From contig JBLDXI010000003.1 in the NCBI GenBank assembly GCA_047495785.1, positions 3,038,001 through 3,102,000 on the forward strand: DNA of 64,000 nt, written 5' to 3'. Under the pieces are notes generated by a model. That model was not told the origin of the DNA. It made no database searches and worked only from the letters and a program-made list of their open reading frames with translations. Position numbers and translations under genes: made by a program. This stretch comes from Lepidodermella squamata. Taxonomy: Eukaryota; Animalia; Gastrotricha. This document shows, one piece after another, positions 24,818-61,500 of this stretch; positions within the stretch are counted from its first letter, which is position 1; each line of letters opens with the position of its first letter.

Positions 24818-27800
24818 TCAGACTTTGAATATGAAAGTTGTGTCCATTAGCTCCTTTTGATGTTCAAGACTTCTGCACTGCAGCCGGGAGTCCCAGGTTC
24901 CGTCCAGGGTGCATAGCACCCAGTCTCGGCCGGCGAGAAGGTAACCATCTTCACAGTCGTAGACGACGTAGTCGCCAGATTGTGGCCGGCCTTCGAACGA
25001 TCGAGAAGTCGGCCGCGCGTTTGCGATCTTCGGAGGCGGAATGTCACAGTACACCGGCGCAGGGTCAGCTTAAAAAAAATAAAAATTCAAATATAAAGCA
25101 AATATTCAAGAAAAATGTCAAGAAAAATCCAATCGATCAAGTTAATCGCATTTGATCCCAAAGATCAAATGAGCTCATTAGAAAAATAAAAAAAATTAAT
25201 TGGCAATAAAACTCTTCAGAGTCCCCTTAAATTAAAATTTAATTGGGTTTTTAATTGGACGATCATCGGTATATAAATCCGGTTTCAGCTTTAGTTTTTC
25301 ATCATCAGCTATCGATTTATTATCAATTTAATCGAATCTTCATCACTATCTAAAACATGCGCGCTTTTCTCGCTGTTGCTGTTGTCGTCCTGCTCGGACT
25401 TGGTAATCTATTTTCCGATCATTTTTGCCCTCTTTCTATACTTTATCATTTCAGCATACTCCGAGGCCAAGGTGTGGAATGTCGAATCGAAGGAGATGCA
25501 CCGCAACTACGAAAAGAAGGTGAGAGCAACGGTGAGCCGATCCTACGAGAACAACAGGGCTTTCAGCAAGAAGTTCGCCCCGAAGAAGGTCGGCCGTAAG
25601 ATGAACAAGCGCCGCGGATCCTTCTCCAAGTCGGTCTCCAAGTCTGTTTCCTACTCGCGGTCCGCCTCCTTCTCCGGCAACCGCAAGAACAAGCGATTCG
25701 GTGGTCGCAAGTTCGGCAAGCACGGCAAGAACTTCGGCTACGGCCGCAAGGGCGGCAAGTTCGGCCACGGCAAGTTCGGCGGCCGCAAGGCCAACAAGGG
25801 CTCGTACTCCTACAGCAAGTCCGTCAGCGTCTCCAACTAAATTAACCTCGAAAAAACTTTCCCACGATATGCTTTTGTAACGTGATCGGCTTAATGAAAT
25901 ATTTTGGTCGAAAATAAACAAGTCATAAATCAACCCTTAAAATCTCATTTGACAGCATTTTGTACCGGTAAAAAATAAGTTAAATGGCTATCTAAGCTTT
26001 CGATGGTTATCTCTCAGTCGCGTATGCCATCAAAACGCCAACTTCAGGCAATTAACATCGTTGCAAACAACACAGCACGCGTTGTTTTGTTTAGCTTAAA
26101 GTGTTTAAAGCCCCGCTTAATGAGATAATTTAAAATGCCAAGATTTTATATCTTTGGCTTAGATCTTAGATAATTTACCTTTGCACATGGGAAGAGTTGT
26201 GCGTTTTGAAAGTTTAATGCGTTGCAGCGGGAAGAAAACAGCCGTGCCCCATGAGCCATCCGTCAAGCATAGCACCTTATTGCGACCGGTTAACGAATGG
26301 CCGGCTGAACACGCGTATTGCACGTAATCGCCTACTCGAGAATCTTCCAGCTTTCGTTCCGGGTATGATCGCATCATAACATGCGCATTTTCGATTTTCG
26401 GCGGCGCCCCACAGGCCTGGTAATTTCGATCAACAGCTGTGAAACAAAAAAAAAAGAAAATAAAAATAATTTTGAATTTTGAAAACATTACTAGTAATGA
26501 AAAAAGGAAAAAATGATAAAGAAATATTTTAAAATTTTAAAATAAATTAAATAAAATTACAAATGCATCTTGGCATTTGAGTCCACTGAGCCAGTCCACT
26601 TTCCTTGTCGGGCTGGCAATAAACAGCTGCCGATCCATCCATGGCGAAATTTTCAAGGCACGAATATATCACAACGTCACCAATCTGGCTCAGTTCGAGA
26701 TTTTCAAAATCGAAAGTTGCCGAGAATATCTCGCCGTTAAGGAGGGTTGGTGGGAAATTGCACGAAGCGCTCTCTTTTGAAAGAATGTCCCGTTGCATCT
26801 CCGGGGTAGCTTCACTGGTCGGTTTTATCAAGTAACTGCCGATAGACATTGGTAAAATCTCATCTGAAAAAAATTAAAGTCAAAATTTTTCTCAAATTTA
26901 ATCAATTTTCTAACCATCTATACTAGGCGGTAAATCCGGATCTTCAGTTGGTCGAGGTGGTAATTCGTCGATAATTAACGGTGGTGGTAAATTAGGATCT
27001 TCAACCAAGCCATTCATTGCCAACCACGGATCGGGAACCGTCGATGTAGGGGTCGTCGTTAATTTCTCGGTCGAAGTGGTGAAAAACAGCGACATCGCCG
27101 GGGTTTTAGGCCGCCTAGAACCTGGTGGCAATGATGGGTGTTGGGTAGAACTCGGCTTCCAAGTGACTGTTTGACTAGTTGACGTTGTAGTAACAGGTGT
27201 TGTAGCTGTTTCTTCCGTCACCGTAGTTGTTACTAGATCGGTTTGAGTCGAAGGTTCCGTAGTTGTAGCAGTACTTGAGGTCCTGGTTGACAATATCGAA
27301 ATTTTCCGTTTAGCCTGGGTTGTGGTCACAGGGGTCGTAGAGGTTGTCGTAGATTCAGTAGTAGACGTGGTAGTTGGCGTAGTAACAGCAATTGTCGAGG
27401 GCTTCTGAGTTGTTAAGGTTGTAGTAGTAGCTTTTGTTGTAGTCGTTGTAGTATGGGGCTCCGTTGTCGTTAAGGCGGTCGTTGTGGAAGGGGTAGTGGA
27501 CGATGTGGTCGTAGTTAAAGTAGTAGTTGTAGTCGAAGTCGAAGTTGAGGTCGAGGTCGAGGTCGAGGTTGAGGTTGTAGTAGGGGTCGTTCGAGTCGAG
27601 GTCGTCGATGTCACAGGTAAAGTAGTCGTCACTGCCGAAGTTGGAATTGCTGTGGTTTTCTGGGTCGAAGTCGTAGTCGGGGCCACAGAGGTCACCGTTG
27701 AGGTCAAGGTCGTTGTGGGCGTTATAGACGTGGTCGATGATGAGGTCGAAGTCACTGGGGTCGAAGTCATCGTCGTCATAGAACTTGTCGTAGAACTCGT

Positions 27801-29718
27801 TGTTGAAGTTGTGGAAACCCTACGAGGTCTCGGAGTAATTTCCATAGTCATTTCCTCGGTAGCAAATGGCGCTACTGGCTTCGGCCTCGGCATCATAAAA
27901 GGCACTCGAATGAAATAAACCGAGCTCAATGGCTTCGGGAATGGAGGCATCTCCGGTTGTTCCGGGCTACTATTATTCAACGTAAAACTCGATGAAGTGA
28001 CCGTCGATGTTTCCAGGTTAGCAGTGGTCGTAACTTGCGTTATAGGAACAATAGGCGGCAGTGTGAACGGGGTAGCTTGCGAGAAAAATGACCAAGAGTA
28101 AATCGCTGGAACCTTTTTAGGAGGTTTCGCCGGTTCTGGCGATTTCCAAATTTTGTTATCGAAAATAAATCTCGCCATTGTTGCAGTTGTTGTATCGACC
28201 AATTTGGCTTCAGTCGTTTGCGTAGTACTTCCAGTTGTAGTTTCCAAGACCCTTCGATAATGAACCCAATCTTTCTGGCCGTTGATTTCTCGACATTTAT
28301 CACTGTCATGCAATATTTGGCACCACGTTTGAATTTGCGCCGAATTTTCTAATTTCGGCAAATTGAACCCAGTACATTCTTTGACGCGCCGACACGCTTC
28401 AACGCATCGGCATAATATATCGCAAGTTGAATCTTTATTCCGAATTTCGTATAAACGCATCGGGCCGGGTCGCGACGGGCTGCAGATAACATTTTCCAAC
28501 CTTTCGAAGCCCTCCTTTTCCGGCCAAGGTTTAACAGCTGCAAAATTTTATTTAAAATTAAAAAAGACAGAAAGTAGGTCAAACTCACGTTTTTGTACGC
28601 ATTTGAGTGAACTCGGCCAGGTTAAGGTAGTCTGGTCGCATAAAATAGTTTCATTTTCCAAGCCATCTGGCGTAACGAAACCGAAATGGCAGGCGTAAGT
28701 CGCTCGGTCAACATTTCGGTATAAAGTTCGCTGTACCAAAGCTCCGTTTTGTATATTCGGAGGATCCGGACACGGTTGGGGCGGCTGACCTTCGCCTTGA
28801 ACCTTCGAACTACTGCCCTGGCCTAGCTCAGCTATCGGTTTCGGAATGAGCGCCATGGGAATATCGGGATTTTCGGGATTTTTCGCGCTTTTCGGGACCA
28901 GCTTCATGGTGGCAATTGAAGGTAGGGCTAATTTGTTTTCGTAATAGACCCACGAATGGGTGGCAACTTTCTCGCAGGCGTCTTCGTAAAGGCTAGCGAA
29001 TTGGCGTGTTCTTTCGATTAAAACACACCAGCCTCGGGATGTTTCTTCCGAAGAGGATGGCAAGTTAAAGCCGACACAGGTCGCATCGGCGATGCAGGCA
29101 ACTGCACATACGCACATCAAGTTACAAGACCGAGGGTCGTGAGAATTCTAAAAAAGGAAGAAAATGCTTCAGAATTTAAAAAAAATCAAATTAAAATAAT
29201 TTTATACAGTAATTTGAAAAAAATTGAAATTTTTTAAAAAGGTGGGCAATTTTTCGAATTTTATATTAATTTTTATTAATTTTTCAGTAAGTAGGTCAAT
29301 TTGGGCCTAATTATGCGTGCGGTCATTTGCATAAAACAAAAATATGCACATTGACCTACTTAATGCGAAATTTGCCAAAAATGATGTAAATCGAAATTGC
29401 ACTGCAAAAATTGAAAAACCCGCCTTAAAAATGCACAATTATTAAAATTCGTCGAAAAATCGGGGAAAACACCGCGAAACATACGCTTCCAAGATTTCTT
29501 GACCGGAATCCGACGCAAGTTGTGTCGCTGTATCGGTTGAAATAGCCAACAAGTCTATCCCATTGGGGCGCAATAGATCGCGGCCCGCCGTCGAAGACCG
29601 TACTCGTGCCATTATTGTTATCATCTTCAACGTCCGGTTCTTGGATAACCGGCTCAGGATCGGGCCTGACTAGCCGCAGGGTGTTAAGCAGAGCAATTAA
29701 TAGAGCTAAATGGCGCAT
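24818..29718 (-). CDS. Secreted PAN-Sushi-PAN-mucin-Sushi x3 protein
   Basis: Signal MRHLALLIALLNTLRLV; two PAN/apple-like units (CAVACIADATCVGFN...WC; CVEACRRVKECTGFN...WC); long Thr/Ser tract; four Sushi modules; last exon 25068-24818. Confidence 0.82.
25357..25840 (+). CDS. Secreted cationic K/R/G/S/F-rich protein B1 (143 aa), nested antisense in last intron of the PAN-Sushi gene
   Basis: TATATAAA at about 25270; exon 1 25357-25402 (46 nt), intron 25403-25454, exon 2 to TAA; AATAAA about 25913; strong C/G-ending codon bias. Confidence 0.9.
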
Positions 29719-30398
29719 ATTTCATGAACTAGAATATAACGCTGCCTCACAGCAGTAATTTCATAGTCGACAAGTCTGGCAGCAGGCAAAAAAGCTTGTC
29801 TCTTCCGCGGCAGTTCTTTAAATACGTCTGATGGTTTAGCGGTGTGTTAACATTGAAAACAGCGTTTGCTTAGCTTAACGCGGCGGCGATTAGCCCTCAT
29901 CAAAATTTTTATACACCATAAATTAGACCGGGCACCACGAAAAATAATGCGCAAAAATACAGCCGTTTATTGTCTTGACATGTTTACACAATAGAGACGT
30001 TATAACGCGCGGTCTTTATCGGTTTTCTATACGGCTTATTCTTGCATTTCGCAGCGCGTCGACTTCTGCTTCAGAGCTCATCATTATCATCATCGTATTC
30101 AGGATGCATTGTCTATGAACAGAAAGTAAACTTGTTAATTACAAGAGTGGTAGAAAATGTCAGGCTATAACACTTTAAATCAGTAAATAAAGGTGAAAAA
30201 ACGTGAAGGAAGACTAAACGGCAACTTAGTGACTCGAGTTAAAAAATCAGTTCAGATGCATTGCGATCAATTTTATTAATCTTTTCTCGATGAGACTCAT
30301 CAATTATCACTCAAATAATACAACGCAGAGAAATAGGTCAAATAAATAATCTGTGCGACTTTTGCTGACATGCGTTATTTTGATGAGTGTAAAAGTTT

Positions 30399-31476
30399 CT
30401 AATAGTAGTAGCCTCCGTGGCGACCGCCATAGCGACCATCGCGATAGCTGCCAGAGACAGATCCGCGGAAGTCGCGGGTGCGGCGTTCAGCCGAGGCGTT
30501 GGCGCGCTTGCGGCCATACTTGGCTCCAGCTTTGCGGGTGTGGGCAGAGTCGGATTCGGCGGCCTTCTTGTTGCTGGTCTTGTAGTCGCGGGCGTTGCGG
30601 GAGTCACGGGCGGCAGAAGCAAAGGCGCGGCGCTTGTGGGCCTTGTTGCGCTTCGCCTTCTTCTCGGCAGCGGCAGCCGAGGCCTTCGAGTCGCGAGAGG
30701 CGTAGGCAGCAGAGTGAGCCTTGCGGGACTTCTTGCCATGGGCCTTCTTGGCGGTCTTTTTGCGGGTGGCAGTGGTGGCAGCACCATCGGAGTCGTAGGC
30801 ACCGAAGTTCTTGGCACCAGATTCGTAGCTGAACTTGTTGACCTTGTTGTGGCCCTTGTCTGCGAAGGTCTTCTTCTTGAACTCAATCTCTTCACCTTGC
30901 TTGTCGCGGGCCTGGTCCTGCTGGAAAGTAGCCTTGCGCTTGTGGTCGGCACGGCCCTGCTTCTTGTTGCGGCGGTGCTTCTGGGCAGCAGCAGCGGCGC
31001 CAGAGTCAGCGTAGGAGTTGGCGTGCTGGGCGAAGGCAGCCGAGTTGCTTTCGCGGTGCTTGCGATTGCGGCGCTTGCTGCCGGCCTTGGATTTCTTCTG
31101 GTCGTAGGCAGAGTCACGCTTGCCGGCCGAGGCATAGCTGGCCGAGGCGCGTTCGCGGCTAGCCGAGCGGTTCTTGATCAGCTTGCGCTTGTCGCTAGTC
31201 TTCTTGTTGTGGGAAGCATCGGCCGAGGCGTAGTCAGCGGCGCCGGATTCCTTCTCAGCGGAGGCGGACTTGCGGTCGTATGTGTCGCGTTCGGCTAACG
31301 AGGCGGAGAAAGAGGCCTTGCGACCACCTTTGCCTTTGCGACCACCATAGCCGCCAGCTGAGCTGAGCGCTAAGAAAAATAATGTTCGAAATTTGGACGA
31401 CTAGGATAACTTTGAACTTTGAAGACTTACCGATGCAGCCCAAAGCGATGATTGCCAAAACCAAGACAGTTCGCAT
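30399..31476 (-). CDS. Secreted cationic Ala/Lys/Arg/Ser-rich protein B2 (338 aa, ends GGYYY)
   Basis: Exon 1 31476-31431 (MRTVLVLAIIALGCI), exon 2 31369-30399 fully open. Missed by the ORF track because exon 2 has no start codon. Paralog of 58764-59871. Confidence 0.92.
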
Positions 31477-31625
31477 CGTAAATAAAACCGATAAAATTTC
31501 TAAAATTCAAGGAATAAATGTTGTTTAAACTCAATAATTTTCATTTTCTGCCCAATAAGGCTAAATAAATAAATATATTCATTTAATAGCGTAGGGCTCC
31601 TCTCAACCTTTCATCACAGATACGC

Positions 31626-32295
31626 TTAATGCCAGAACCAGCCATTGCGACGGCCGTAGAAGTCGCCGGACGAGGACGAGCCGCTGTAGAATCCACGGTG
31701 ACCGAAGCGACCGTAGCCGTAGCCATGGCGACCACGGCCGTAGAATCCACGACGACCGTGGCGACCGTATCCGAAACCGCGGCGACCGAAGCGACCACCA
31801 TGACGACGGCCATAGAAACCGCGTCCGTGGCGACGGCCGCGGAAGGAACCAGACAGGGACGAGCGGGAGCCACGGCGGCCGATGAAGTGGCCACGGCGAC
31901 CACGGTTGTCACCAGCGCTCGCCGAGGCGGAGTTCTTGTTGACGGAGGCCGAGGCGTAGTTGCCACCGCGACGGCGACCGAAGAAGCCGCGACGGCCACG
32001 GTTGTTGCCGGCAGAAGCCGAGGCGGAGCGGCGGTTGACCGAGGCAGAGGCGAAGTTGCCGCGACGACCCTTGTGGCGGAAGATGCCACGACGACGGTTG
32101 TCACCAGCTGATGCGGAGGCAGAGTTCTTGTTCACCGAGGCGGAAGCTTTGTTTTCATTTCCACGCTTGCCAAGGCCCTTGTTCGCCGAGGTGGCGGCTG
32201 GAAAACCAAAAATAAAATTCCCCAAAATGTAAAAAATCAAATGAATTACCGATGCACAAGAGGGCGACAACAGCTGCGAAGAGGATAACACGCAT
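31626..32295 (-). CDS. Secreted Arg/Gly/Ser/Phe/Tyr/His-rich protein B3 (205 aa)
   Basis: Exon 1 32295-32250 (MRVILFAAVVALLCI), exon 2 32197-31626; three ASASVNxxSASASAGxNR repeats, then a GRRHG/GFYG tail. Confidence 0.92.
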
Positions 32296-32682
32296 CTTCG
32301 AATAATACGAATCGATTTATTAAATGAAAAGCCGCGTTGAACTGATGAATTGAAAAGGTTCTCTACCACCTTAAATATCCGCTCATGGGATTGTTGAGCA
32401 ACCAATGCTGCGCCCGAACGCGAGCGTGATTTGCAACGGTGATCGCGCGCGTGGTTTTCCGTATTTTTCACCAATATTTCAACATTTTCATCAAAACATG
32501 CACGTGCCAAGCGGAAAAAAACAACAGCAAGAGCGATTGTTGTGAAAAATAATTTCACCATTTTTCTACGCCTCAGAGGATGATTTTATTTCTTCTGAAA
32601 GTTTCACGTTCACTACCTACACTTAAACAACATTTCATCCAATGTCCAAAAAATGTTCATCTAAGCGAGAAGGTCAATATTA

Positions 32683-34621
32683 TTATTTTCCATTCGGCAT
32701 CGTTCCAGCCCTCAGAAATTCTTGAAAATCGCTGTCCAGCATCAAGTTATCCATTTGGGCTAGGTCGGGCTCAAAAATGAACCTTCAAGTCCAAAAAATT
32801 AATTGAATAATTTGCTCATTTTTCAATAAATTACTTGAAAAAATTCTGTTGGCTAGCGATTCGCATCTTGAGAACAGTTTGCTGCCTCTGGCTGCCCATT
32901 TCATCGCCGAAACCGATGACAAAAATTTTGCCACCAGCTCGTTTTATCGCTTGGGCATCCGGGGCCGCATTGACTATTGCCAAGCCTCGTTTAGCTAAAT
33001 TTGAAAAAAAAACATGTATTAATTCGAAAGAAGGAGCGTTGAAGTACCATTCGTGACGTAAACTATGCGGGTAGATGCGAGGCTTAGTTGGCAATTTAAA
33101 TCATTCAAATTCATTGGCCCTAGCCCAGCCAAATTGGGCACAGCTTGTAACAGGTAGGATAGGTCATCGTCAAAGGCCTGGGAAAATTACACGAAAATTC
33201 GAAATCAACTATAAATATTTTTTCTCACATTTTTCATGAGAACAACGTTATTTTCCAGCCACTGGCTCCAGGCTGAAACTTGCCGGCCTGTGAGTTCTTG
33301 CGTCACCTGAAGCGTGGTCGTAACAGCCGGGCGCGATTTTTGGTTCGTATTCTCGAACAAGGCAACTGCTCCTAGAATGAACGAATTTCCACCGTTGAAA
33401 AATCCCATTCGCTGCCGGAAATTCAGCGTTTCAAGAAAATTGATAACCGCCCGTTGTTGCAAGTCGGCACTTTCAGCAATTAACAGGTCGAACAAGAAAA
33501 CCAAATGGGTTAGATAGGTCGATTTGCAGTTAGGATCCGGCGTTGTAGTAGGTTTAGGGATGGTTGGCCGAGTTGAGGGTTTCATGGCGCAGCTTGGAAT
33601 GCTAGACCATGACCCGTTGGACATACATTCGACCCGGGTTACAGTGCCTAGTTTGGGACACGAAACCATCGCAAAACTGGAAACACGGCTCATGGTTCCC
33701 GGAATCAGATTGCTTTCACCGATGAAAGCATCTTCGATGACAGGTAACAAACCGCAAGATTTTTCCTGAATTAATTAAATTTGAAATTAAATTAAATTAT
33801 TTTGAAAAATTAAATTAAAATTGAAATTTATGAAAATTTTTGAAATTTAAAAATTTAAATTTGAATTAATTCTTGAAATTTTTTGAAATTTCTCGAAATT
33901 TTCAAGTCACCTTGATGCAAACCGGGCGTTCCGACCACGATTTATCCGGCTGGCAGAAGACGTTAGCATCGCCCACCAAAACCAGTTCATTCGTACACTG
34001 GTATGTGACGAAAATACCCGGGTCACTGAACGAAACGATAGCATTTTCGACAATAGGCGGGTCGGCACAGCCACGCTTCTGAGTTGTAATGATGATCCGC
34101 CGTGTTGTAGTCGAGGTCGATGACGGGGCTGATGATGCAAGGTCTTTAGCTACGTCTTGTGGCTTGGTCGCGGCTGGGCTCAAAGTTGAAGGACCGGGTG
34201 TTGTAATCACCTGGCAATACGGCTTCTCCGACCAAAACCCGTCCTTACTGCATTCGATCGTCCGCGATCCGATGAGTTGGAAATTCGCTCGGCAACTGTA
34301 GACAACGATTCCAGTGTCTTTGAAAACAATGTCCCCATTCTGGACAATCGGAGCCTCTGGACACGTTGATTTAGATACAACAGTGGAACCCTGCTGTTGG
34401 GTGACGGCACCCGGTTGTAGGGTGGCTGAAGGTTTTAGCGTACTTTTCGTGGTCAAGGCCGCGAAATTAACCGGCCGAAAGGTGACGGCTTGGAACCTGC
34501 GTTGAGTCGACGACGCGTTGGTGTTAGCCGGTTTAGGCTGTAGCGTTGTACTAGGCAGCCATCTCGGCCCTTGGCCAGCTACCTCAGCGACAAAAATCAA
34601 CAAAATCCAGCCGCTGCGCAT
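32683..34621 (-). CDS. Secreted protein: Thr/Pro linkers, 3 Sushi domains, divergent C-terminal VWA
   Basis: Signal MRSGWILLIFVAEVAG; LVFLFD...KIFVIGFG VWA strands; last exon ...DFQEFLRAGTMPNGK*. Confidence 0.8.
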
Positions 34622-35236
34622 TTTATTTTTGTCAAGTATGCCGATGAAGGATTTTCGACCTAGTCGCTCTATCGATCAGTCGTCGCTAATTTTTTTGTTT
34701 TGTTTCAATTTGCTATGCACTAGATCGGAAGGGGCGGGGCTTTCAACGCCGAGGTGCGAGCCGCCGGGTGCCCAGTGGAAATTGAAAAAAACACATGATC
34801 GACGGCGGCGGCGAAAAGCGCAGTGGCTATTTTTCATGATTTATTTCACATTTTAAAACACTTTACAGAGCGATGTTTTAGTATAACAACACAACAGTAA
34901 TTATAAGGTGATCGATATTTTTCACCAAAAAGGGGCCCCTCTCTCAAAGGATTCAATAATCATTATTTTTTTTGTATAATCCGAAAATTGAATTTTTTCG
35001 TTCAGCCATCATCACGCCTGTTATAATAATAATTAGTGCACTAATCTCGATTGAATAAATAATAAATAGCCAGTACAAAAATAATGAGTGTGCGCCTCAG
35101 GGGGAAGGGGGAATAATAAAATAAATATAAATTATCGCGAAAAATTGATCAACAGTTAGGTTTTAGCTGCGTTTATAATTGAATATTAAATGATTCAAAA
35201 TTGAATGTCATCAATCAAGTCGGCCATGAAGAAGTT

Positions 35237-39836: not shown

Positions 39837-39944
39837 TATATTATCATTTGCTTCGGATTTCAACTGAAAAATGTGTTGAACATAACAAAAAATATCACAT
39901 TTTTTTTCTAACCGAGATTGATCTAGTCACTAATTGCTAATCAT

Positions 39945-42900: not shown

Positions 42901-45900
42901 CGTTCCATCAGCCGCACACTATAAGAAAAAATGAACAATATTTGATTTTTGTTAGCCAATCCATTGAAACGATTTTCAGAGTCTGAATTAAGGCAGCATA
43001 TTATTTTCAATTTTCAATTATTTTGTTATTGAGAGGCGATGTCTGTCCATTCAGTTAAACATGTCTCAAACAATAATAATTCAAACAAATTATGTGGCTC
43101 GAGAAATTCCTGCAAATTCACTAATTTTTAATTTTAAATGATTGTAGGAAGACATTTCTTGAGAATGATAACTGCGAAAGAATGGCTTTACGTTAGGAAG
43201 TAACCTCTCTTATCGCAATGGTGGGAGAACAAGTCAGGATGGCCGAGCGGTCTAAGGCGCCAGACTCAAGATCTGGTCCTCGAAAGAGGGCGTGGGTTCG
43301 AACCCCACTTCTGACATGATTTTTTATTTTTCCTTTTTTTATTTTTATTTTTATTTCAAATTTCAAATACAACTCAAATGCGATTTCTCATATACACCGG
43401 GTCATAGACAGGTCATAGGAAAATCGCGCACATAAAATCAAAACGTCGCGCAAAACAGAAAGGAGTACCCTAATTAAACAATGCGCGACGCTTTTAATTA
43501 TTATCTTTCAACTCTTATTTCAAATTTTGAGCGTAAGAATCAATTAATAAATAATAAATTACTCAATTTTGATTAAAATTAACTTCGTTTATGGCAATGC
43601 ATACCATGCATACCAAACTACTGCCAATGATGAAAAATTCCACTAACCTGAACGTAGTTATTTCGCGTCGTCAACAAGTAGCCTTCCAAGCATTCATACA
43701 TGACCAAACTGCCGCCAACCGGTGTTGTATCGTAACTTTTGTAAATAACAGCCGAATTCGCAACAGACGGCGGTGCCAAGCACAGAGTCTGCGGAATATC
43801 CGACGCTTTCAAACACCTCGGCAAAGTCGACCAGCGGCCCGTGTCCTGGCAAACCGCCGTCGAAGGCACGGTATTCACGACAAAGCCTTCATTACACCGG
43901 AAGAAAACTCGCGAACCAACAACCGACTTGGCATTCGAAAAATCAGAATAAAGCGCCTGGCCGTTGTCGATTTGAGGCGCGGCGCCACATGTCGACACGC
44001 TTGACCGCACACAGCGCGGGGCTAGCGACCAGCCAGACGCGCCGCACGTCACAACGGGCGATCCTTCAATCCGCCACGATTCGGCGCATTGAAACGTGAT
44101 TGTATCACCCAATTTCGGCACGGAATTCATCGCGGTTTGCGTTGAGATGAACCCGTTAGTTACCACGGGTAGTACCGAGCATGACGACGACCGGGTACAA
44201 GTAGGAATCGCCGACCATTTCAACGGGCTGGACGAGCAAACAACCTGCCGATCGCCGTTCATTTGATAACCGTCGTTACACATGAAAAACACGGTATCGC
44301 CCAAACCGCCGTTTGACGGCGTCCCGGTGATGTATTGGGTGTAGATAACCCGGCCGTTGTCGATGGTCGGCGTCGCCCCGCATGAATCTACCTTATTCGA
44401 GCCGATACCGCCAGCGGCTGAGGCTTGAATCCCGTCTAGCGGCTCGCAGTTCGCGGTTTGCGACCAACTGCCGTTAGCCTGGCAAGTTATGACAACATAA
44501 GCCGCGTCCTGGACTTGGAAACCCGGTTCGCACTGGTAAAAGGCCTTATCATCGGGGATACTGGTCGCGTCAAACGTTTTCACGGTTAATTTCGCGTTTC
44601 TCAAGTTAGGCGCAGCGCCACATCCCGCCGGGATACAAGTCGGGGCTAAAGTCCAAGTTCCGGCTGGTTTTTGGCAGGTAACGGCGTTGATTCTCGGATC
44701 AGCCAACGCGAAGCCTAATTTGCATAGGTAAATGACTGACGTCGCGTTGACCGAGGCGATGAAGCCGTTTTCGATACTCGGCGGGGGTCGGCATGGGGCG
44801 AAGTTAATGGCTTGGATCGATCTGGCGCAAATCGGTAATTTCGACCAGCCATCCGGGGTGCAAATTACCGTATCAATCGAGGTGACATCGAATTGATACC
44901 CGGAGTTGCATTGGTACTGCAAAATAGTTCCGATCGGGTATTTTTCGAGACTCGACGAAATTTGGGTGACTAGCAAGGCGTTAGCAACGGGCTGAATCGG
45001 GCCGCAAGATGAGTCTTGGTCTAGATTCAGCTGTTCAATCGGGGCTGCGAGTGGCAGCTCGCGTAGAGGCTGGTTTATAACTTTTTGGGTTGTGGCCGGG
45101 GTGGTTTTCGGTGTGGTTGAGGTTGGCTTGACGACTATTACTGGCTGGGCGTCGATGTTCATCCGATTTCCGACGTCGTTGTTGTCATTTGCGGCGTTGT
45201 TTGTGCTTCGGGAGCAACTCGGCATCACGCTCCAAGTACGGGATGTTTCGTCACCTGAGCATGTCACAGTCTCAGGGCCAACCAAAGCGTAACCCGTATC
45301 ACAAGAATCTGCAATAAAAGTTGAATAAATCTGGGAAATTTTGTGAAATTTCAAAAACAGTTATTAAAAAAGCTTTTTGGGTGTACCAATTCTAGACCCT
45401 AAATTTAGGGACTCTCATTTTAAAGTTTCTGATCCTGTTTCCAGGTGTTTTCTTTGTTTGCGCGACTTTGGGGCACGCTTTATCAAGAAACTGGATGAAT
45501 TTAGAGCAAGAACACCGGAACCTCAATTTTAACGCAAGTGATGTTAAGTACCGGATGCAGAGCTATTGATCTACATAATAATTTTCTCGCGCCGTCGAAC
45601 CATTTTTTGCAAATGCTAAATATAGTAACAAAATCTTCGATGTATAGTGATTTGCTGTAAATCTAAAGCTAAAAATAGAACATGTTGCTATTTTTGGCAC
45701 TGCAAAAAATGGTTCGACGGTGCGAGAAAATTATTATGTAGATCAATAGCTCTGCATCCGGTACTTAACATCCCTTGTTTTAACGATGACGATTTTCCTT
45801 CACTTTGAAATTTTCTTAAAATCAAATTTGAACTTCAAACTTACAATAAAGAGTATCTCCTGGTCCTCCGAAGCGTGAATTTCCGCTCTTGAAAACAGAC

Positions 45901-51414: not shown

Positions 51415-51851
51415 TCAGTGTTAATCATTTAAATTCTAGTTATAGGCAAGAAATCAAGGTTATTATTCTAAAAGTTGAGCCATTTGTTCGTGCACTCTTG
51501 TTAATTCATAGTTTTTAGGCGACGTGCTCTTCTGCCTGCAGCAGCAGGGTGCACCAAGCAACGACAATGCCGCTCGTATAAACAGCGCATCGCAAATCGA
51601 TAGGCGCCCAGCCTAAAAAATGAAGGTGTGATACGCCTGGTGCTCGTATAAATGTGTATGGTGACTCAGCGATAAATAATTCAACAGTGCGCCATTTATT
51701 CAAGGGGATGATGTTGGCAAAAACAACACATCTAAAGCTCATCGTTGGTGAAAGGCTATCGATCATCAGGTTCCAATCATGATCGGAATCAGCTAAAAAT
51801 CCAGAACAATCACGAAAAATACTCAAATTTTATTCCGAAAATTGGTAACTA

Positions 51852-52407
51852 AATAAATCGTGGTCAGACTTTTTAGCAGTGACACTTCAGCAAATGAGGG
51901 TCAAATCAGCAGTGACACCTTTTCAGTAAAAATTCCATAAAAATCAAATTTTTGTATTAATTTAAATAATTCTTGTAGACAAGTGAGCAGTGACATTTCA
52001 GCAGAGACAAAATATCAGTGACTATTGAGCAGTGACTTTTCATCAGTGACAAATGAACAAGTGATTCATCAATTTTTATTCATTTATAACGGGCATTGAA
52101 CTTGCACTTTTTGAGCTCAACTTCAATGCAGCGAATAGTCCCCCCGCTGAATACGGCTGAAATTCTGTTGATGAAATGTCCCCGCTGAAATGTCACTGCG
52201 CAAATGTCACCGAGATAAAGATAATAAATTTGGAAAAATTTAGGATAAATTATCAAAAATCACTGCTGACTTGTCACTGATGATTTGTCACAGCGCAAAT
52301 GTCGCAGCTCAACTGTCACTGCTCATTTGTCACTGATGAAAAGTCACTGCTCATTTGACCCGTATTTGCTGAAGTGTCACTGCTGAAAAGTCTGACCACG
52401 ATTTATT
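51852..52407. mobile_element. Foldback-like element with reiterated CAGTGAC/GTCACTG subterminal motifs
   Basis: TIR AATAAATCGTGGTCAGACTTTT.AGCAGTGACACTTCAGCAAAT; motif orientation flips at the centre; TSD not resolved. Confidence 0.8.
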
Positions 52408-52559
52408 CAAGGCCGTTTATTTTCGGCAAAAAAACATTAATTCGTTGATGATTATCGCAATTGGCAAAAAATCCAGAAAAATTGTGAAAAAACTCTAATT
52501 TTATTCCTCTAATCACACAGCAACAAAATAATTTCGTGCAAAATTATCACATAAAATCA

Positions 52560-55500
52560 TTAAATTCTATAAGCCATCGATGGCGATTTGGCTGTGCACA
52601 AAAAGTTGAGAAAATTTGTTTCCGACAACAAATTAGAACTGAGCAAGGAACTCGACGCCAGGACGCGAACGAAATTCGGGTCGGAGGCGATTGATTTTTT
52701 GTACGCACCCTGCAAATCGGCATCAGTTAATGCCGATCCAACGCCAATTACGTAAGTCCTCATGGCGCCGCGTAAATTACGAATTGACGCCAATTCCGTC
52801 GCGGCGTTATCGACACTTGAAACCGGCCGGCGGGTTGAAGTTATCAGTACAAGTCGAGTTTCATATTGCAACGGCAAGACTGGTAGAATTCGAGTCCTGA
52901 CTATGCTCAATAGTCGCTGCAAATCTGTCGGGAAGATTACAACAGGAATAGGTTTAACACTTGAATCAAGCCAGCCATTCCATCGAGCGAAATCGGTTGG
53001 ATTAACCGATGTATCCAGGGTAACAATTTGCTCGGTTGTATCGAGCCCTCTTGCCTGGAAATTCGCCCCGCCGTAGCCGATCTTGACCGAATTTTCGACA
53101 AGGCTGCGAATGGCAGGTGGGACAGATTTCATGAAGGAAATCAGCTCATTCGCGTTATCGTTGTTAATACTGGCAGATTCAGCGAAATCGAGGATGAAAA
53201 TAACATTCAGACCCCCTGCTGGGCAGTTTATTGCTGAATTTGAACCCTTGGGTTGAAGAGGCTGGGCAGGCTGAAGCGCCGGCTGGCCATTTGCGGTTTC
53301 AGGCCCGACGCAAACTGGTAAAATCGACCAAACTCCACTAGGTTGGCAGGTTACGACCTGATTTTGCGTATTAGCCGGGGCAGCGCGGCATTTGTAAGTG
53401 ACTTTATCGCCGACGATGCTTCGAGTTTCGCCAACTGGGATTGTTGTATCGACTACGTCAGCGTTTGCTACGAATGGCCGGATGCCGCATGTTACGGCGT
53501 CGGTTGAGCGGATGGTGCAGGTTGGTAGGGGTGACCACAGGCCAGTCTCGCGGCAGCGGACCCGCGCTTCGCCGCTGATGACGAGAGGCGCTTTGCAGGC
53601 GTATTGAACAAAGCTGTTCACGGTACTGGCTGAGCCTTCGAAGTTCCGATCGGTTTCAAGTGCGTTCGGCACGATGGGAGCAACTCCACAGGTGGCTTCT
53701 ACGGGTAAAGAAAGAAGTTGAAAGTAGATGAAGATAATCAAGCTTCAAAAAATGTATAAAAATTAATTTTAATGAAATTAAAAAAAAAATTAAAAAAAAG
53801 TTTGAAATTGAATTTTAAATTTTAAAATACATTATTAAATTAAATTTCAAAATTTATTAGGCCTAAAAATTGAACTTACGATTGGTTACAGCGCTGACAC
53901 AAGTTGGCGATGAGCTCCATTTCCCACCCGCTTGGCAAGATACCGTTCGCGAGCCGATAAGGTTAAAACCAGCCCGGCACTGGTAAGTCACAAGGGTTCC
54001 GGTTTTGCTTTCTTGGTCGACAAAATTGCCGCTGATTATGCCGTTTTCAACATCTGGAGGCTTGCCACATGTATCCACTGCAAAAATTGCAAAAAATTAG
54101 AATGACAAATCTTATTACGAACTTTAAAAATATTCAAATTTAAAAGAAATAATTTTCAATTTTAAAAATATTTTTAGTAAATATTTTAAAATTTTAATCT
54201 AATTAATTTTTTAAAATTGCGGAATTGTCTTACGTTTCTTTGGTCGACAAAAGGGCTGAGCTGTCCATAGGCGAGTGGCTTGGCAGCGAATAGCGGCACT
54301 GCCGACGATTTCCAGCGAATCAGGCCGGCATTCGTACCAAGCTACGTCACCCTCAACGCTTGCGGAACCTTTCACCGTTGAAAACGTTACTACAGCATTT
54401 TGAACTGTTGGAATCGCGCCACATCCGCTAGCTACAATTAAATTACGAAATTCGATGAATTTTCTCGGAAAAATTATGCAAACCTTGGCTACGGCATTGC
54501 GGCGGATCGCTCCAGTTTCCGTCCTGGAGACATACAACCTGAGCGCTATTTCGGTCGATCACAAAGCCCGGGTTGCATTTGTAGGTGATGTAGTCACCCT
54601 GTTTCGAGGCTGATGTTTCGCTGAAAGATCGCAATTCTATAACTGCATTAGCAACAAGAGGAGCTGTGCCACATAAACCAGGGTCTGAAAATCGAATTTC
54701 AAATAAAGAAATTCGAAATAATTAATTCAGAATTCATACTTAATTTGCATTCGGGCGGAGATGATGACCAACGACCATTAGGTTCGCATGTCAAGACTTG
54801 CAACCCAGTCATAGTGAAGCCGGGCGTACAGCCGAAAACATAAACTCGGCCATCAGCACTGCTGTGAATTATGCGCGAATTGGGAACACCCGGTAAAGTG
54901 GGACATTTGAGGGCGACCGATTGACAAACGGGAAGTGAGCTCCAAACACCAGTCGAAGTGCATTGAACAACGGATTTAGCAGGGTCTACGAATTCGTAGC
55001 CAGGATTGCAAGTGAAAGTTATCTAAAAACAGAAAAAATGAAATGAAATGATTAAATTAAATTATATTCAAATTAATTTAAAAAAATGTACGAAATTAAT
55101 AAATAACATAAATTCAAATTGTAATAATAGATAAATGAGTTAAACATTAATTAAAAAATTACCTTATCGCCATCAGTTGCAACCAATCCTTGAAATGTTT
55201 TTTCGCTAATTCGACCGAATTCGACTTGCGGCAGTGTTTTACAACTAGTAGCCGGTACGCACTCAACCGGCTCCGTCCACGTGCCATCAGCGCCGCAAAT
55301 GACGTAATTATTGACCCTGTCGCCAACTTTTTGCCTGAATTGATAACCCTCCGCGCATTCGAACACGATAACTGAACCTGTTGGGGCGTTGAAAAGATTT
55401 CCAGCCGGAATGTTGGAGAACACGCTAACTGCATTGCGGATTTCAGGCCGTGGTCCGCAGGGCTTGGAAGTCGGCAGCTGGTTCTGCTGTTGGCACCTTG

Positions 55501-58500
55501 GCGGTTGGCTCCAGGTTCCGTTTCGAGTGCAGACGGTGTTATCTTTACTGCCGGATGTCAGAATGTTAGGTTCGACGCAACGATACTGCACTTTACTGCC
55601 TGTTGAGCTTGAACTGCCTTCGAAGTCTTTGAAAATCGTCACGCTATTGTCAACTCTCGGCGGGGCATTACATGTTGAAACCGCTGGCACAAAAAATAAT
55701 AATAAAATGTAAATAATCGCAAAGCTGTTTGCATAAAAATAAAGACTTGGAGCAATAATCACAGTTTTAAATTTTAAATTTTAAAATTTTTATCAAAATT
55801 GAGTAAGGGAAAATTTGTAACCAGTAAATTTGTAACAAAATTTGTTTCCAGCTTTTTTTGCGTTTTTTGCAATTTTGAATTTTATTACGGATCAATAATT
55901 AGCCAAAAATGACCCTGAGACCTTTGGATTTTTATTTTAGATACCTGGTACCCTTTGCCATTTTAAGGTAGACCGTCAAAGCAGCAAATAGCCAAAACAG
56001 CAAATGCGACAAAACAGCAAATTTTTAAACTTTCGAGATAACAGCAGAAACACGGTGCATCTTTTCCATAGAAGGCTTTTGCTGTTTAGTCGCGAAATAA
56101 AAAAAATTCTGTTTCGTCGCATTCGCTGTTCTGCGAAGTTGCTTTTTTGTCGCCGTACTCATTTTAAATGTTTGCTTTCAAGGCTACTGAAACCGAAAAA
56201 ATCACTGATTAATGAAATCGATGTCGGTTTTGTGGTCTTTAATCACGCGTCACAGTGGAATCTATCGGTTAGGTACGATAATAAAAAAAGATTCAAAGGA
56301 GAATTTGAAACCCGAAATACTATGATGTGTTGGCGCTGGAACCTTAGTTTTGGAACTGGAACCCTCAATTTCGAGTGCACGCTTGACGTATCGAAAATTG
56401 AATAATATAAATTTGTAAATTCCCTAAATTTCTGATTTAATTTAAAAAATTCCGAAATTCGAAACTCGAGCTCACTTTGGTCTCTGATGCAAGTTGGCAG
56501 TGGATTCCACTGATTGTTCGAACACGTTGAGACAGGGTCACCCGAAATAATGTAGCCCTTATCGCAGGCGTAAATGACCTTGCTCGACGAGGTTTTCTCG
56601 AGCACATAGCCGTTCGCGACATTCGGCGGGTTGTTGCAACCAGGAGCGGCTAAAATATGTTATAAAAAGTAACGATAATTAGCTTGATCTAAGTCAAAAC
56701 CTCTAAGAAGGCAAAGAGGCGGGGTAGACCACGCTTTATCAATGCAATAAATGCGTTCGAAGCCAGTTAAAACGTAATCGGTATTGCATTCGTATTCCAA
56801 CCAATCAAGCCCGCCGTTGGCAGTTGCATTACTACGTCTAGTCACCCTGCCGTTTTGAACAACAGGCTCCGCCGGGCAGGGAACTGGGCGCGTCGAAATA
56901 GGCGGCGGTAGGTCACGCTGGTCAGAAACTTCGATGCAGATTGGGACATTCGACCATTTGCCATTGGCGAGGCAAGTCGCTTGATCACGTTCGACAGTTT
57001 TGAAGCCGCTATTGCAGCGGTAAGTGGCTACGTCACCTTCTCTAGCGGTACCCGTGCCGTAGGTGGTGCGAGTTACAACTCCATTGCGAATTTCAGGCGC
57101 GCGACCGCACTCGGATCTAACGCAGCGCAATTGCGAGGGTGACCACTGTTTGTTAGCCCGACATGTGATTAGGATATTCGAGGCGTCTCCAGCGATTTCG
57201 GTGCCAGGATCGCATGAATACTCTACTTCGTTTTCGTTGGTCATTTTCACGGGCAGAGCGCGTTCGACGCTCGGCGGCCGTCCGCAAGGCGACGTTTGAG
57301 CAAGACCTTGACGAAAAATTGAAACAATTAATTTTCCAAAATTCAGAGATTTATTATTTTAGATTTATTTCTCATTCATCTTAGGGAAATATTTTCGAAT
57401 GAATAATTTCGAAAATTCTCAGACACATTGAACTGAAAAACAAACCAGCGTGGCGCGACAGTGGCGTGTCAAACACGCGCCCAAGTTGTTTTTTATGACA
57501 TGTTAAAACGATCGATTAAGGTGGGTGCAGGGTTTCAAGGTTAAACCGACTGGTTGGAAAGTGGAACAAAACAAGCTCGCGATTTCGGTATTAGGACGAG
57601 CACGTGGAAATTAATTGGAGTTGCATAACAACCCTACCTATCGGCCTATATAAACTTCGGTCGGCAAATCAATTTTCATCAAGCGTCTTCTCTTGTATTC
57701 TCAATTTATCAAGTGAATATATTTTTCCGAAACTTAGTGAACATGCGCGCTATTTTGGTTGTGGCTGTTGTCGCCCTCTTCTGCATCGGTAATATCCTGA
57801 AATGCGAATCCACATATGAAAAGTTGCATTTTTCAATAATTTTTAGTCGCCACCTCGGCGAACCTTGGGGTGTGTTTTTTTATTCACCCCGAATTTTCGG
57901 GTCGCCCACTTCTGAAGCTCACCTTGAAATGAAACTTTGGAGCTGTGCAGAAGACTTCATTGCCCGAAAACCTCTGGTGTTTACATCGAAAAATTTGTCA
58001 TCCGGCGCCTACACCTGAGCTTCCCGAAATTCCGGGTAGAATAAAAAAACACACCCTTGGCAAGCGTGGACGTGGCAACAATGTTTCCGCCTCGGTGAAC
58101 AAGCGCTCTGCCTCCGCCTCGGCCGGTGACAACCGTCGCGGTGGTCGCTTCTTCGGCCACAAGGGTCGTCGCGGCAACTTCGCCTCTGCCTCCGTCAACC
58201 GCCGCTCCGCCTCGGCTGCTGCCGGCAACAACCGTGGCCGTCGCGGCTTCTTCGGTCGCCGCCGCGGTGGCAACTACGCCTCGGCCTCCGTCAACAAGAA
58301 CTCCGCCTCGGCGAGTGCTGGTGACAACCGTGGTCGCCGTAGCCACTTCTTCGGCCGCCGTGGCTCCCGCTCGTCCCTGTCTGGTTCCTTCTCCGGCCGT
58401 CGCCACGGACGCGGTTTCTATGGCCGTCGTCATGGTGGTCGCTTCGGTCGCCGCGGTTTCGGATACGGCCGTCACGGTCGTAGTGGATTCTACGGCCGTG

Positions 58501-61500
58501 GTCGCCATGGCTACGGCTACGGTCGCTTCGGCCACCGTGGCTACTACGGCAGCAGCTCGTCCTCGGCCGGCGACTTCTACGGCCGTCGCAATGGCTGGTA
58601 CTGGCATTAAGCGTATTCGCGGAAGAACTTTTTTGCTCAAGAGTCGATTTTACGTCGAAATGCTAAATTTATTTATCCATACGGTTGCAAATAAGAGCAA
58701 GATTATAAGAGCGAATAAGATGACAATTTTTCTTTCCTATTAGATAATTTTTAATCGAAAATAATGCGAACTATCTTGGTTTTGGCTATTATCGCTTTGG
58801 GCTGTATCGGTAAGGGCTTAAGGTCTTCATCAGCCATTTAATCTTTGCTGTACCTTTTTAATAGCTCTCAGCTCTGCCACCTTCAACCAGAAGGAGGGCG
58901 GCCACAAGGGTGGTTACGGCAAGGGTCATGGCAAGGGTGGTCGCCGTGCCTCTTTCTCCGCCTCGGTCGACCAACGCGACACCTACGACCGCAAGTCCGC
59001 CTCTGCTGAGCAAGAAAACGGTGCCGTCGACTACGCCTCGGCTGATGCTTCCCACAACAAGAAGACCAGCGACAAGCGCAAGCTGATCAAGACCCGATCG
59101 GCCAGCGCAGAACGCGCCTCGGCAAACTACGAATCTGCTGGCAAGCGCGACTCCGCCTACGACCAGAAGAAGTCCAAGGCCGGCAGCAAGCGCCGTGGTC
59201 GCAAGATCCGTGAAAGCGCCTCGGCCGCTCAAGCCCAGCACGCCAACGCCTACGCCGACTCTGGCGCCGCTGCTGCTGCCCAGAAGCACCGCCGCAACAA
59301 GAAGCACGGCCGTGCTGACCACAAGCGCAAGGCTGCTTTCCACAAGGACCAGGCCCGCGACAAGAAGGGCGAGGTGATCGAGTTCAAGAAGAAGACCTTC
59401 GCCGACAAGGGCCACAACAAGGTCAACAAGTTCAGCTACGAATCTGGTGCCAAGAACTTCGGTGCCTACGACTCCGATGGTGCTGCCACCACTGCCACCC
59501 GCAAAAAGACCGCCAAGAAGGCCCATGGCAAGAAGGCTCGCCAGGCCCACTCTGCTGCCTACGCTTCCCGCGACTCGAAGGCCTCGGCCGCCGCTGCCTC
59601 GAAGAAGGCGAAGCGCAACAAGGCCCACCACCGCCGCGCCTCAGTCTCCGTCGCCCGTGACTCGCGCAACTCCCGCAAGTACAAGGCCAGCAGCAAGAAG
59701 ACCTCCGTCTCCGACTCTGCCCACGCCCGCAAGGCTGGAGCCAAGCACAGCCGCAAACGCGCCTCCGCCTCGGCTGAACGCCGTACCCACGACTTCCGTG
59801 GCTCATTCTCTGCCGGCGCTCGTGACTACGGCCGCGGCAAGAAGGGTGGCAAGCATGGCTACTACTACTAAAAACTTGATTCAAGCTGCCTTGTGAGATC
59901 AAATTATTCTTCGGTCTGAAGTGATGTTAAATTATTTATTAAGGAATCACCGAAATGTCCATGAAAATAAAGAGAGCATCAAGTTTTCATTCGCAACTTT
60001 TTTCGATTTTGCCAATTTTTTCGCTTTTGCATGAAATCAACAGAAAAGACTGTTTCTTGCCGAAATTAAGATGTAAGGAACTTACGATCAGATATGTTGA
60101 AGCATTTCGGGAAAGGCGTAGACCAGCCATCGAATCGGCATATAATCTCCGGCTTCGAGTTGACCTCCAGCTGGGCGCCTCGAATGCACGCATACTTGAC
60201 CACAACACCCACCCGACTTTCACGGGTCTGCATCACCTTGTCGTAGTCGAATCGATCAGATACAACGGCGTTCTCAATTGTTGGAACACGAGAGCAGTTC
60301 AAATCGCGCCGACATTCAGGCACATTCGTACTCCAGCGCCCATCAGCCATGCACGTGACCTCAGGCGCGCCTCGCAAAATTAGGTCAAATTCGCCAGATA
60401 CGCACTTGTAACGCACGTAGTCACCCAATTTACTCGTTGGCCCAGTTATAGACGATGTCTCAATAACTCCATTCGTTATATTAGGAGCAGGGCCACATGT
60501 CTCTAAATTCACAAAAAAAAAATTCAAAAAAATTCAAAAATAAATATTGAAAGCTAACGAATGCATGGTGAGATGTCAGTCCATTTCCCGATTTGGCAAA
60601 TTGACGTAGATTCCCGGCCATTTAAAATGAAGCCGGAGATGCATTCGAATGTAACGCTATCCCCAGTGAAACTGTCAGTTCCGGTCATATTTGACCTTAT
60701 TTCACGAGCGTTCGAAAAAGTTGGCTTAGGTCCGCATGTCCCTTTATAACAGAAAATGGGTTATTTTCAATTTTTTTGAAATTTTTCCTCGCTAACGTTC
60801 ACAGTGCGGCTTTTCGCTCCACGCGCTCCCACGACACGTAATTTGCGTAGGAAATGACTTAACAAACGCATAGCCGCTATTGCATTGATAAATGACGACA
60901 TCGCCATCTTGAGGTCGTGATTCATCCTTCAATAACCGGCGGTTGATTGAGGCGAAGTCAACGTCGGGAATTCGGCCGCAAGTTGGAATTTCAGCCACAC
61001 ATCTTGGGATATTTAGCCATTGCCCGTTCGAATAGCAAAGCGTGTCTTCGCCGATTTTCGGCTGCTTTTCGAAGCCGCGATTGCATCGATAGCGGACCCA
61101 AGACCCAGCTAAACTGCGGTCGTTCAAAAAATTGCTGTCGTCAATGGTTCCATTTGCGACTACTGGCGGAGATCCACAAGTTCCTTAATAATTCGACAAA
61201 AATTGAATATTATTAAAAAAATTAAAATGAAAAGAATGAATAATAAAAAAAATTAAATTGAATTTTTTTTAATTTCCTAAAATTTTAGAAAATAGGTAAT
61301 TTTTTTAATTTACTCAAATGTGTTCGATTCAGATTTTCAATTTTCAATTCTTAAGAATGATTAACATTATTATTATTTTTAGATTTTTCAATGTCTTAAA
61401 TTTCTAAAAAAATTCTTCATTACTTACTGATGCATTCGATGGTTGGCGACCATCTCTGAGTTCGCGGGTCACATTCTGCTGTATCGTCGCGGCCTCGCAA

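Follow-up and report, generated by a model that had tools for sequence, protein, structure and literature searches.

A 64,000-nucleotide (nt) stretch of the genome of the gastrotrich Lepidodermella squamata (contig JBLDXI010000003.1, positions 3,038,001 to 3,102,000 of the forward strand), which we call the window, carries five two-exon genes, B1 to B5, that by their sequences belong to a lineage-restricted superfamily, amplified genome-wide rather than locally and numbering more than 110 such genes. Their products are probably very highly expressed parts of one secreted bulk material, predicted to be the cuticle or its scales, the eggshell or an adhesive. We favour this reading because of the gene dosage, the near-identical copies, a codon bias resembling that of RPL3, the secretory signal, the absence of cysteine, the predicted disorder and the co-amplification of linked types.

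The gene models of B1 to B5 were read straight from the window DNA, and exon 2 of each was translated. The features are as follows, numbered from the first letter of the window, where (SX)n stripes are runs of (Ser-X)n.

25270..25277, plus strand: TATA-like box of B1 (TATATAAA), about 85 nt 5' of the ATG, with a putative promoter function.
25357..25402, plus strand: coding part of B1 exon 1, 46 nt, encoding Met-Arg, 13 hydrophobic residues and base 1 of a split Ala codon.
25403..25454, plus strand: B1 intron, 52 nt, phase 1, GTAATC...TTTCAG.
25455..25840, plus strand: B1 exon 2, stop codon included, encoding a K/S/G/R/F-rich mature part of 127 residues with an isoelectric point (pI) of about 11 and three (SX)n stripes.
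31431..31476, minus strand: coding part of B2 exon 1, 46 nt.
31370..31430, minus strand: B2 intron, 61 nt, phase 1.
30399..31369, minus strand: B2 exon 2, stop codon included, encoding an A/K/S/R-rich mature part of 322 residues with a C-terminal YYY.
32250..32295, minus strand: coding part of B3 exon 1, 46 nt.
32198..32249, minus strand: B3 intron, 52 nt, phase 1.
31626..32197, minus strand: B3 exon 2, stop codon included, encoding a G/R/S/A/F/Y/H-rich mature part of 189 residues.
57743..57788, plus strand: coding part of B4 exon 1, 46 nt.
57789..57846, plus strand: B4 intron, 58 nt, phase 1.
57847..58613, plus strand: B4 exon 2, a B3-type mature part split by a miniature inverted-repeat transposable element (MITE).
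58764..58809, plus strand: coding part of B5 exon 1, 46 nt.
58810..58864, plus strand: B5 intron, 55 nt, phase 1.
58865..59871, plus strand: B5 exon 2, stop codon included, encoding a B2-type mature part of 334 residues with a C-terminal YYY.

Exon 1 of B1 to B5 consists of ATG-CGN (Met-Arg) followed by 13 hydrophobic codons, and its 46 coding bases run into G/GTAA (the slash marking the exon end). The donors are of the G/GTAA type, the acceptors are YAG, the introns are 52-61 nt long and in phase 1 in five of five genes, and each gene has one large exon 2. At the -1 position of the predicted signal-peptidase site, the split codon (G/CN or G/TC) places Ala (Val in B4), and the residue at -3 is G or C; inspected by eye, all copies show the arginine at position 2, a hydrophobic core of 12-13 residues and G/C-x-A at the exon junction. 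In effect, exon 1 is a self-contained predicted signal-peptide module whose last base opens the codon of a small residue at the predicted cleavage site, while exon 2, according to these models, encodes the whole mature protein. With such a canonical signal, secretion of the B1 to B5 products is plausible. The design exceeds what chance would give: when both window strands were scanned de novo for hydrophobic ATG exons (28-79 nt) followed by an intron (40-110 nt) and an open reading frame (ORF) of at least 70 codons, it was recovered only in B1, B2, B3 and B5, together with three spurious models. An original prediction, made from the window sequence, had described the short phase-1 intron in all five genes as well as three mature compositions (K/G/F-rich in B1; A/K/R/S-rich in B2 and B5; R/G/F/Y/H-rich in B3 and B4) with YYY ends in B2 and B5, and all of this stands.

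The genome was searched as an assembly of 121.2 Mb in 151 contigs with the exon-2 sequences of the three types as queries. The copies found number at least 38 for B1, at least 27 for B2 and 13 for B3, to which at least 11 long relatives of B3 are added; most of them lie on contig C3 (1.09 to 3.62 Mb) and some on C1, C9, C12, and C29. About 80 loci were modelled with the exon length left free. Exon 1 came out at 46 nt in the top model of nearly all B1- and B3-type genes and of those B2-type genes that have a short B3 as partner, and at 49 nt, in phase 1, in the B2 subgroup paired with long B3 genes. In total 116 paralogues were modelled, with 46 nt in 106 and 49 nt in 10 (the one B2 subgroup), phase 1 in all, and introns mostly of 49-63 nt. 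The 46 coding nt that the original prediction had claimed for exon 1 of the five window genes are thus read directly from the sequence and are also kept family-wide.

A degenerate genome pattern was then made from exon-1 bases 1-35, with the reversed pattern as control; it does not contain the donor and therefore does not presuppose the exon length. It matched the genome 99 times (reversed control, 0), and 40 of these matches lay outside the families already known. All but one of the 40 are likewise genes for a cationic stripe protein with 46 nt in exon 1, two of them of the long B3 type. The exception is B1-type, with a B1-like exon 2 about 1 kb downstream (ATG at C3:1573562; exon-2 match at C3:1574585-1574953), and does not fit the short-intron model. 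A fourth type, B6, was found through the exon-1 pattern only: it has ~35-40 copies (loci L051-L085 on C12, C29, C32, and C33, and L050 at C3:3108760-3111760, just past the end of the window), a mature part of ~160 residues, and a relationship to B1. Twelve aligned B6 proteins are 92-96% identical to the reference copy, whereas the identity of introns and flanks is only ~0.64. A fifth type, B7, was seen at one locus (L049, C3:2537900-2540930, minus strand). Its exon 1 is 46 nt long and its intron ~51 nt; the mature part, of ~100 residues, resembles B6 at both termini and ends C-terminally in a perfect (SX)4E stripe.

The GC-rich stretches of the B genes are open in several frames, and the coding frame therefore needed proof (the G+C content of the window is 0.38-0.58 per 2-kb block, with most blocks at ~0.43). 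Among paralogues, third-position differences are clearly in excess in a frame-specific manner, and the median ratio of nonsynonymous to synonymous substitution rates (dN/dS) in the predicted frame is 0.35 for B1, 0.19 for B6, 0.38 for B2, and 0.38 for B3. Exon-2 identity is 0.70-0.94, compared with ~0.62-0.66 for introns and 100-nt flanks. The inverted repeat that the window contains, the B2/B3 pair against the B5/B4 pair, is limited to exon 2 (88% and 94%) and is therefore no assembly palindrome. TATA-like boxes precede 30 of 34 B1-type genes (30-140 nt upstream, median 91 nt), 32 of 35 B6 genes and 21 of 28 B3 genes, and in these three types their distance to the ATG is constant at ~88-91 nt; polyadenylation signals lie 3' of the stop codon in family genes. 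Judging from these patterns of substitution, the B genes are real genes under purifying selection on the coding frame.

That they are no functional genes, but repetitive low-complexity DNA with chance open frames or artefacts of an assembly made from DNA amplified by multiple displacement amplification (MDA) and from HiFi data (PMC11660948), is very improbable and already largely refuted. All frames are indeed open in the GC-rich stretches, and one gene triplet is present as an exact mirror-image duplicate (L022 and L023), but chance frames would account neither for the frame-specific third-position excess and dN/dS values below 0.4 nor for an ATG, donor, acceptor, and phase that are kept in 116 copies while the introns diverge. 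The constant spacing of the TATA-like boxes in B1, B3, and B6 and the optimal codon usage also speak against it; the copies differ by 5-50% and are therefore not assembly duplicates.

Codon usage was compared with a single reference gene pair, the two RPL3 genes. The AAG share is 86-93% in B1 and B3, the two types tabulated, and 83% in RPL3, compared with 28% in the neighbouring sushi genes of the window; the TTC share in family genes is 92-98%, and AGA, AGG, and GGG are avoided. The relative synonymous codon usage of the family types correlates at 0.59-0.80 with that of RPL3, as against 0.28-0.44 with that of the neighbouring sushi genes. Because this usage resembles that of RPL3, we infer very high expression of the family genes.

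The mature proteins have 119-438 residues (13-45 kDa), a median pI of 10.4-12.0 and a net charge of +0.15 to +0.25 per residue; all types are Cys-free (Cys 0-0.05%) and nearly without proline and tryptophan, and tyrosine makes up 2-5%. The feature that unites them is the alternating-serine stripe. When the residues covered by (Ser-X)n runs with n>=3 were counted per protein, there were 40 in B1, 46 in B6, 25 in B3, and 10.6 in B2, compared with 1.7-2.8 in composition-matched shuffles, a 4- to 24-fold excess across types. Stripes with Glu or Asp directly after them are in excess in B1 (3.0, against 0.08) and in B2 (3.85, against 0.53). The blocks between the stripes are composed of K/G/F/H in B1 and B6, of R/G/F/Y/H in B3, and of A/K/R-rich segments in B2. 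Among 17 B2 paralogues, a core of ~290 residues has more than 100 invariant columns, and B2 is therefore more than low complexity. AlphaFold2, given paralogue alignments as input, returned no confident fold for B6 or B5: B6 had a predicted local distance difference test score (pLDDT) of 51 without secondary structure, and B5 one of 45 with long low-confidence helices. The mature proteins are accordingly predicted by this model to be disordered.

Three materials of gastrotrichs come into consideration, namely a cuticle with scales, a thick eggshell, and the adhesive of the duo-glands. With its more than 110 codon-optimised orphan genes, the superfamily is an obvious candidate for one of them and would give concrete molecular targets in an understudied phylum. 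Our literature search on gastrotrichs brought up no work on proteins from the cuticle, scales, eggshell, or adhesive. We would describe the mechanism as follows. The serine stripes would act as beta-forming zippers in assembly; they may be phosphorylated by a Golgi Fam20C-type kinase and so become anionic, and three Fam20C-like secretory kinase loci are present in the genome. Anionic stripes could then bind to polycationic blocks, whether in their own protein or in a partner, and this pairing could lead to a charge-driven condensation and subsequently to solidification of the secretion. Coacervation or phosphoserine chemistry, the former already named in the original prediction, is compatible with the (SX)n enrichment and the Fam20C-like loci. 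Tyrosine/DOPA (3,4-dihydroxyphenylalanine) cross-linking, also proposed there, received little support: tyrosine is at 2-5% only, and a genome search at E (expectation value) <= 1e-5 found no tyrosinase domain, which is weak evidence in that control genomes also gave none and that exon splitting or a BUSCO completeness of ~81% (PMC11660948) could hide one. DOPA chemistry thus appears less likely from the sequences.

Several points weigh against the bulk-material reading or parts of it. No result discriminates among cuticle, eggshell, and glue; no acidic partner protein has been identified; and the superfamily, being without homologues, has no cross-species support. B6 has no acidic residue after its stripes, and the (SX)nE-like enrichment is seen in B1 and B2 only. 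The phosphorylation of the stripes is pure inference, and the very high expression is deduced from codon bias alone, with one reference gene pair. A still more specific version can be put forward only tentatively, and we hold it to be doubtful as a whole: that phosphorylated stripes and polycationic Gly/Lys/Arg blocks drive the coacervation and beta-sheet solidification of a self-condensing, multi-component underwater material, built from small proteins at high gene dosage, convergent with caddisfly silk and sandcastle-worm cement, descended from a single ancestor with a signal exon plus one further exon, and forming the protein basis of gastrotrich cuticle, scales, eggshell, or glue. If true, it would be an independent natural case of the (SX)n-plus-polycation design of underwater silks and cements, in small, recombinant-friendly proteins.

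The cement of the sandcastle worm is built on a logic of polycations plus phosphoserine. Like the proteins of this cement and the caddisfly H-fibroin, which are secreted under water, the proteins described here have alternating-serine (SX)n blocks, some of them Glu-ended, between Gly-rich or basic spacers; no protein search returned sequence similarity to either. The caddisfly H-fibroin consists of [(SX)nE]m blocks and G-rich spacers, with phosphoserine beta-domains bridged by Ca2+ (PMC13267644, PMC4929942). Set against this pattern, (SX)n blocks and G/K/R spacers occur in all types here, but (SX)n-E/D is enriched in B1 and B2 and absent in B6. The organisation is different, since small proteins (13-45 kDa) from more than 110 two-exon genes take the place of one giant repetitive gene, and Lys is as prominent as Arg.

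Silkmoth chorion genes have a tiny first exon for the signal peptide and one large second exon. The B genes resemble chorion and the insect low-complexity cuticular families, large multigene families in which small structural proteins of low complexity are secreted and the clustered genes, in tandem or paired units, have been amplified and in part homogenised. Chorion differs in composition, being rich in Cys, Gly and Tyr rather than polycationic; Pfam detects neither a cuticle nor a chorion domain here, and the pairs of this superfamily stand head to tail, not divergently, with ~150-nt spacers. For cuticular protein arrays, gene conversion and abundance have been described (PMC2793513). The eggshell (vitelline) precursors of trematodes, which contain a TES domain and 12-15% Tyr converted to DOPA, are bulk-secreted in a sister phylum and hardened outside the cell (PMC11727788). 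They are, like the B-type proteins, Cys-free and contain Gly, Lys, His, and Tyr, but the B-type proteins have no TES or other Pfam match, only 2-5% Tyr, and no tyrosinase domain was detected in the genome search described above.

In the frog-skin peptide and conotoxin superfamilies, a conserved signal exon is joined to very different mature regions, and the genes are clustered. A conserved signal-encoding first exon with differing mature parts is also what we see here. While the mature products of those superfamilies are short, processed, and under diversifying selection, the mature regions of the B genes are long, under purifying selection, and highly amplified. The membrane activity that the original prediction had also considered leads to an alternative in which the B products are host-defence (antimicrobial) precursors that, once secreted, are cleaved at dibasic sites to release short peptides acting on membranes. 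The strong positive charge and the G/R/F/Y/H composition would suit such precursors, the genes are multi-copy and clustered, and Gly precedes 10 of the 11 RR sites in B3, the pattern of amidated peptide precursors, although G-RR is often expected by chance at 20% Gly and 17% Arg. The arthropod glycine-rich antimicrobial peptides and the Gly/Tyr-rich NLP/CNC peptides of nematodes offer a certain resemblance, but their mature peptides, which are inducible, differ in being short (less than ~100 residues) and fast-evolving. Mature proteins of 13-45 kDa (119-438 residues), the conserved ~290-residue core of B2, and purifying rather than diversifying selection (dN/dS 0.19-0.38) make this alternative improbable; the ~35 B6 copies are near-identical in protein, which suits dosage and not diversity, the codon bias is at the level of a ribosomal protein gene, and (SX)n stripes are no feature of antimicrobial peptides. 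Taken together, the sequence data point to a bulk extracellular material in preference to signalling or defence peptides.

Whether all types of the superfamily descend from one gene was addressed by profile-profile comparison with hhalign, with reversed alignments as control. B1 and B6 gave a probability of 97% (E 1e-11; reversed control 49%), and by their sequences B1, B6, and B7 are related to one another. No cross-type score for the mature parts of B1/B6, B2, and B3 was convincingly above the reversed controls, the comparison of B2 with B3 reaching 30% (E 5e-4) across 37 compositionally biased columns. The view of B1 to B5 as one diverged family, as originally proposed, thus stands for B1 with B6 and B7, but is not borne out by the mature parts of B1/B6, B2, and B3. 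Because these are not above the controls, the case for common descent rests on the architecture, the (Ser-X)n stripes, the composition, and the tight linkage.

It is conceivable, though in our estimation unlikely, that the mature types are unrelated low-complexity genes which came to share a signal exon by exon shuffling, gene conversion, or convergence on a phase-1 intron at the cleavage site. In its favour are the general frequency of phase-1 introns close to signal cleavage sites, the hhalign results, the 49 nt instead of 46 nt in one B2 subgroup, and the exon-1 nucleotide identities between types: these are 0.54-0.67, which is only a little higher than a codon-permuted null with a median of 0.48 and a 95th percentile of 0.59, and most pairs, at 0.54-0.59, fall within the upper half of that null. 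On the other side, the same 46-nt length is found in four types and 106 genes, and the signal sequences form a chain of intermediates from B6 through B1, a long B1 variant (ending ...ALICIG), and B3 to B2. All types also share the grammar of (SX)n stripes and basic blocks, B1, B2/B5, and B6 have the motif [RK][RK]-x-SFS-x-S close to the first stripe, and the linkage of B3, B2, and B1 is tight and conserved. Common descent of all types is not demonstrable from sequence, but the identical exon length and phase, the signal intermediates, the stripe-and-block grammar, the composition, and the linkage suggest it. On this reading of common descent, the superfamily would be a clear case of a conserved signal-peptide exon on mature domains diverged beyond recognition.

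According to the gene models, the order B3 (or long B3), B2, B1 recurs as a conserved linked unit that has undergone repeated amplification. In 19 pairs, 113-198 nt separate the stop codon of B3 or long B3 from the ATG of the next gene on that strand, a B2, and B2 is often followed by B1 after 452-829 nt in the same linked unit. At L022 (C3:3262200-3266800) and L023 (C3:3276300-3280800), a long B3-B2-B1 triplet occurs as an apparently exact mirror-image duplicate ~10 kb apart; this could reflect a genuine palindrome or else a chimera, inverted during the MDA-based assembly. The two spacers within the window are the following.

31477..31625, minus strand: B3-to-B2 spacer, 149 nt (150 nt counting the last base of the stop codon), without a TATA box, with a pyrimidine tract and TTTTAG/A ending 23 nt before the B2 ATG.
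58614..58763, plus strand: B4-to-B5 spacer, 150 nt, with a pyrimidine tract and TTAG/A ending 20 nt before the B5 ATG.

There are 17 paralogous spacers besides these two (e.g., L009, L012, L022). A TATA box was found in 2 of 18 B2-type genes, and a pyrimidine tract with TTAG/A at 11-25 nt before the ATG in 16 of 18, compared with 2 of 34 B1 and 1 of 35 B6 genes. These upstream features of B2 could indicate a B3-B2 operon resolved by trans-splicing, or else a compact, TATA-less pyrimidine-initiator promoter. Our literature search found no paper linking spliced leaders to Gastrotricha, and the B3-B2 pairs with their ~150-nt spacers raise the question of gastrotrich operons and trans-splicing as in the flatworm relatives.

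As far as the searched databases reach, with exon 2 as the query throughout, the superfamily is an orphan without detectable relatives. No Pfam family was assigned to the five window genes and six further paralogues (E <= 0.01-0.1). A word-indexed search of 5.8 billion clusters gave nothing for B3 exon 2 (8000 low-complexity candidates scored) and 29 candidates for B6 exon 2, none of them significant; a full phmmer search of B5 exon 2 against 1.84 billion representatives gave 0 matches. Scans of Joint Genome Institute (JGI) metagenomes with the B6 and B2 alignments returned 239 and 258 pattern stretches, respectively, none of which was confirmed, and the ESM Atlas returned nothing for B3. The sole language-model lead for B5 was DUF4779 (PF16009, arthropod "histidine-rich glycoprotein-like"), which is likewise a low-complexity secreted family; it scored 0.84-0.86 in the ESM Atlas, below the threshold of 0.9, shared 149-156 of 256 features, had no Pfam match, and was set aside as a compositional look-alike.

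B4 differs from the other window genes in carrying an insertion.

57869..58055, plus strand: MITE-like insertion in B4 exon 2, 187 nt, with perfect terminal inverted repeats of 17 nt and with CTTGG duplicated at the target site.

The insertion starts 22 nt past the B4 acceptor and brings an in-frame TGA, and the simple two-exon model of B4 is therefore broken. At least 40 dispersed copies of the 187-nt element, 79-98% identical (the closest 98%), are present in the genome, and we therefore regard the element as a MITE. On the 3' side of the insertion, B4 is 90% identical to B3 across residues 7-189. It is probably a recently disabled copy. The sole in-frame option for a rescue by splicing, from the exon-1 donor to a weak GGAG acceptor within the MITE, was rejected as a confident model.

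The remainder of the window contains features of other kinds. Between B1 and the B2/B3 pair, a 529-residue open frame on the minus strand (26910-28499), for which Pfam gave no match, contains long mucin-like runs rich in Thr and Ser. Between the two B gene pairs, the minus strand from 33200 to 57300 is densely occupied by an array of multi-exon genes with many Sushi/CCP domains (Pfam Sushi, E 4e-53 for the ORF at 43618-45354 and 1.5e-8 for that at 52560-53741); some of them have VWA-like C-terminal parts, and their codon usage is ordinary (AAG 28%). Two short inverted-repeat pairs, 45529-45611/45701-45783 (83 nt, 95%) and 51852-51932/52327-52407 (81 nt, 86%), may be further MITE-like elements.

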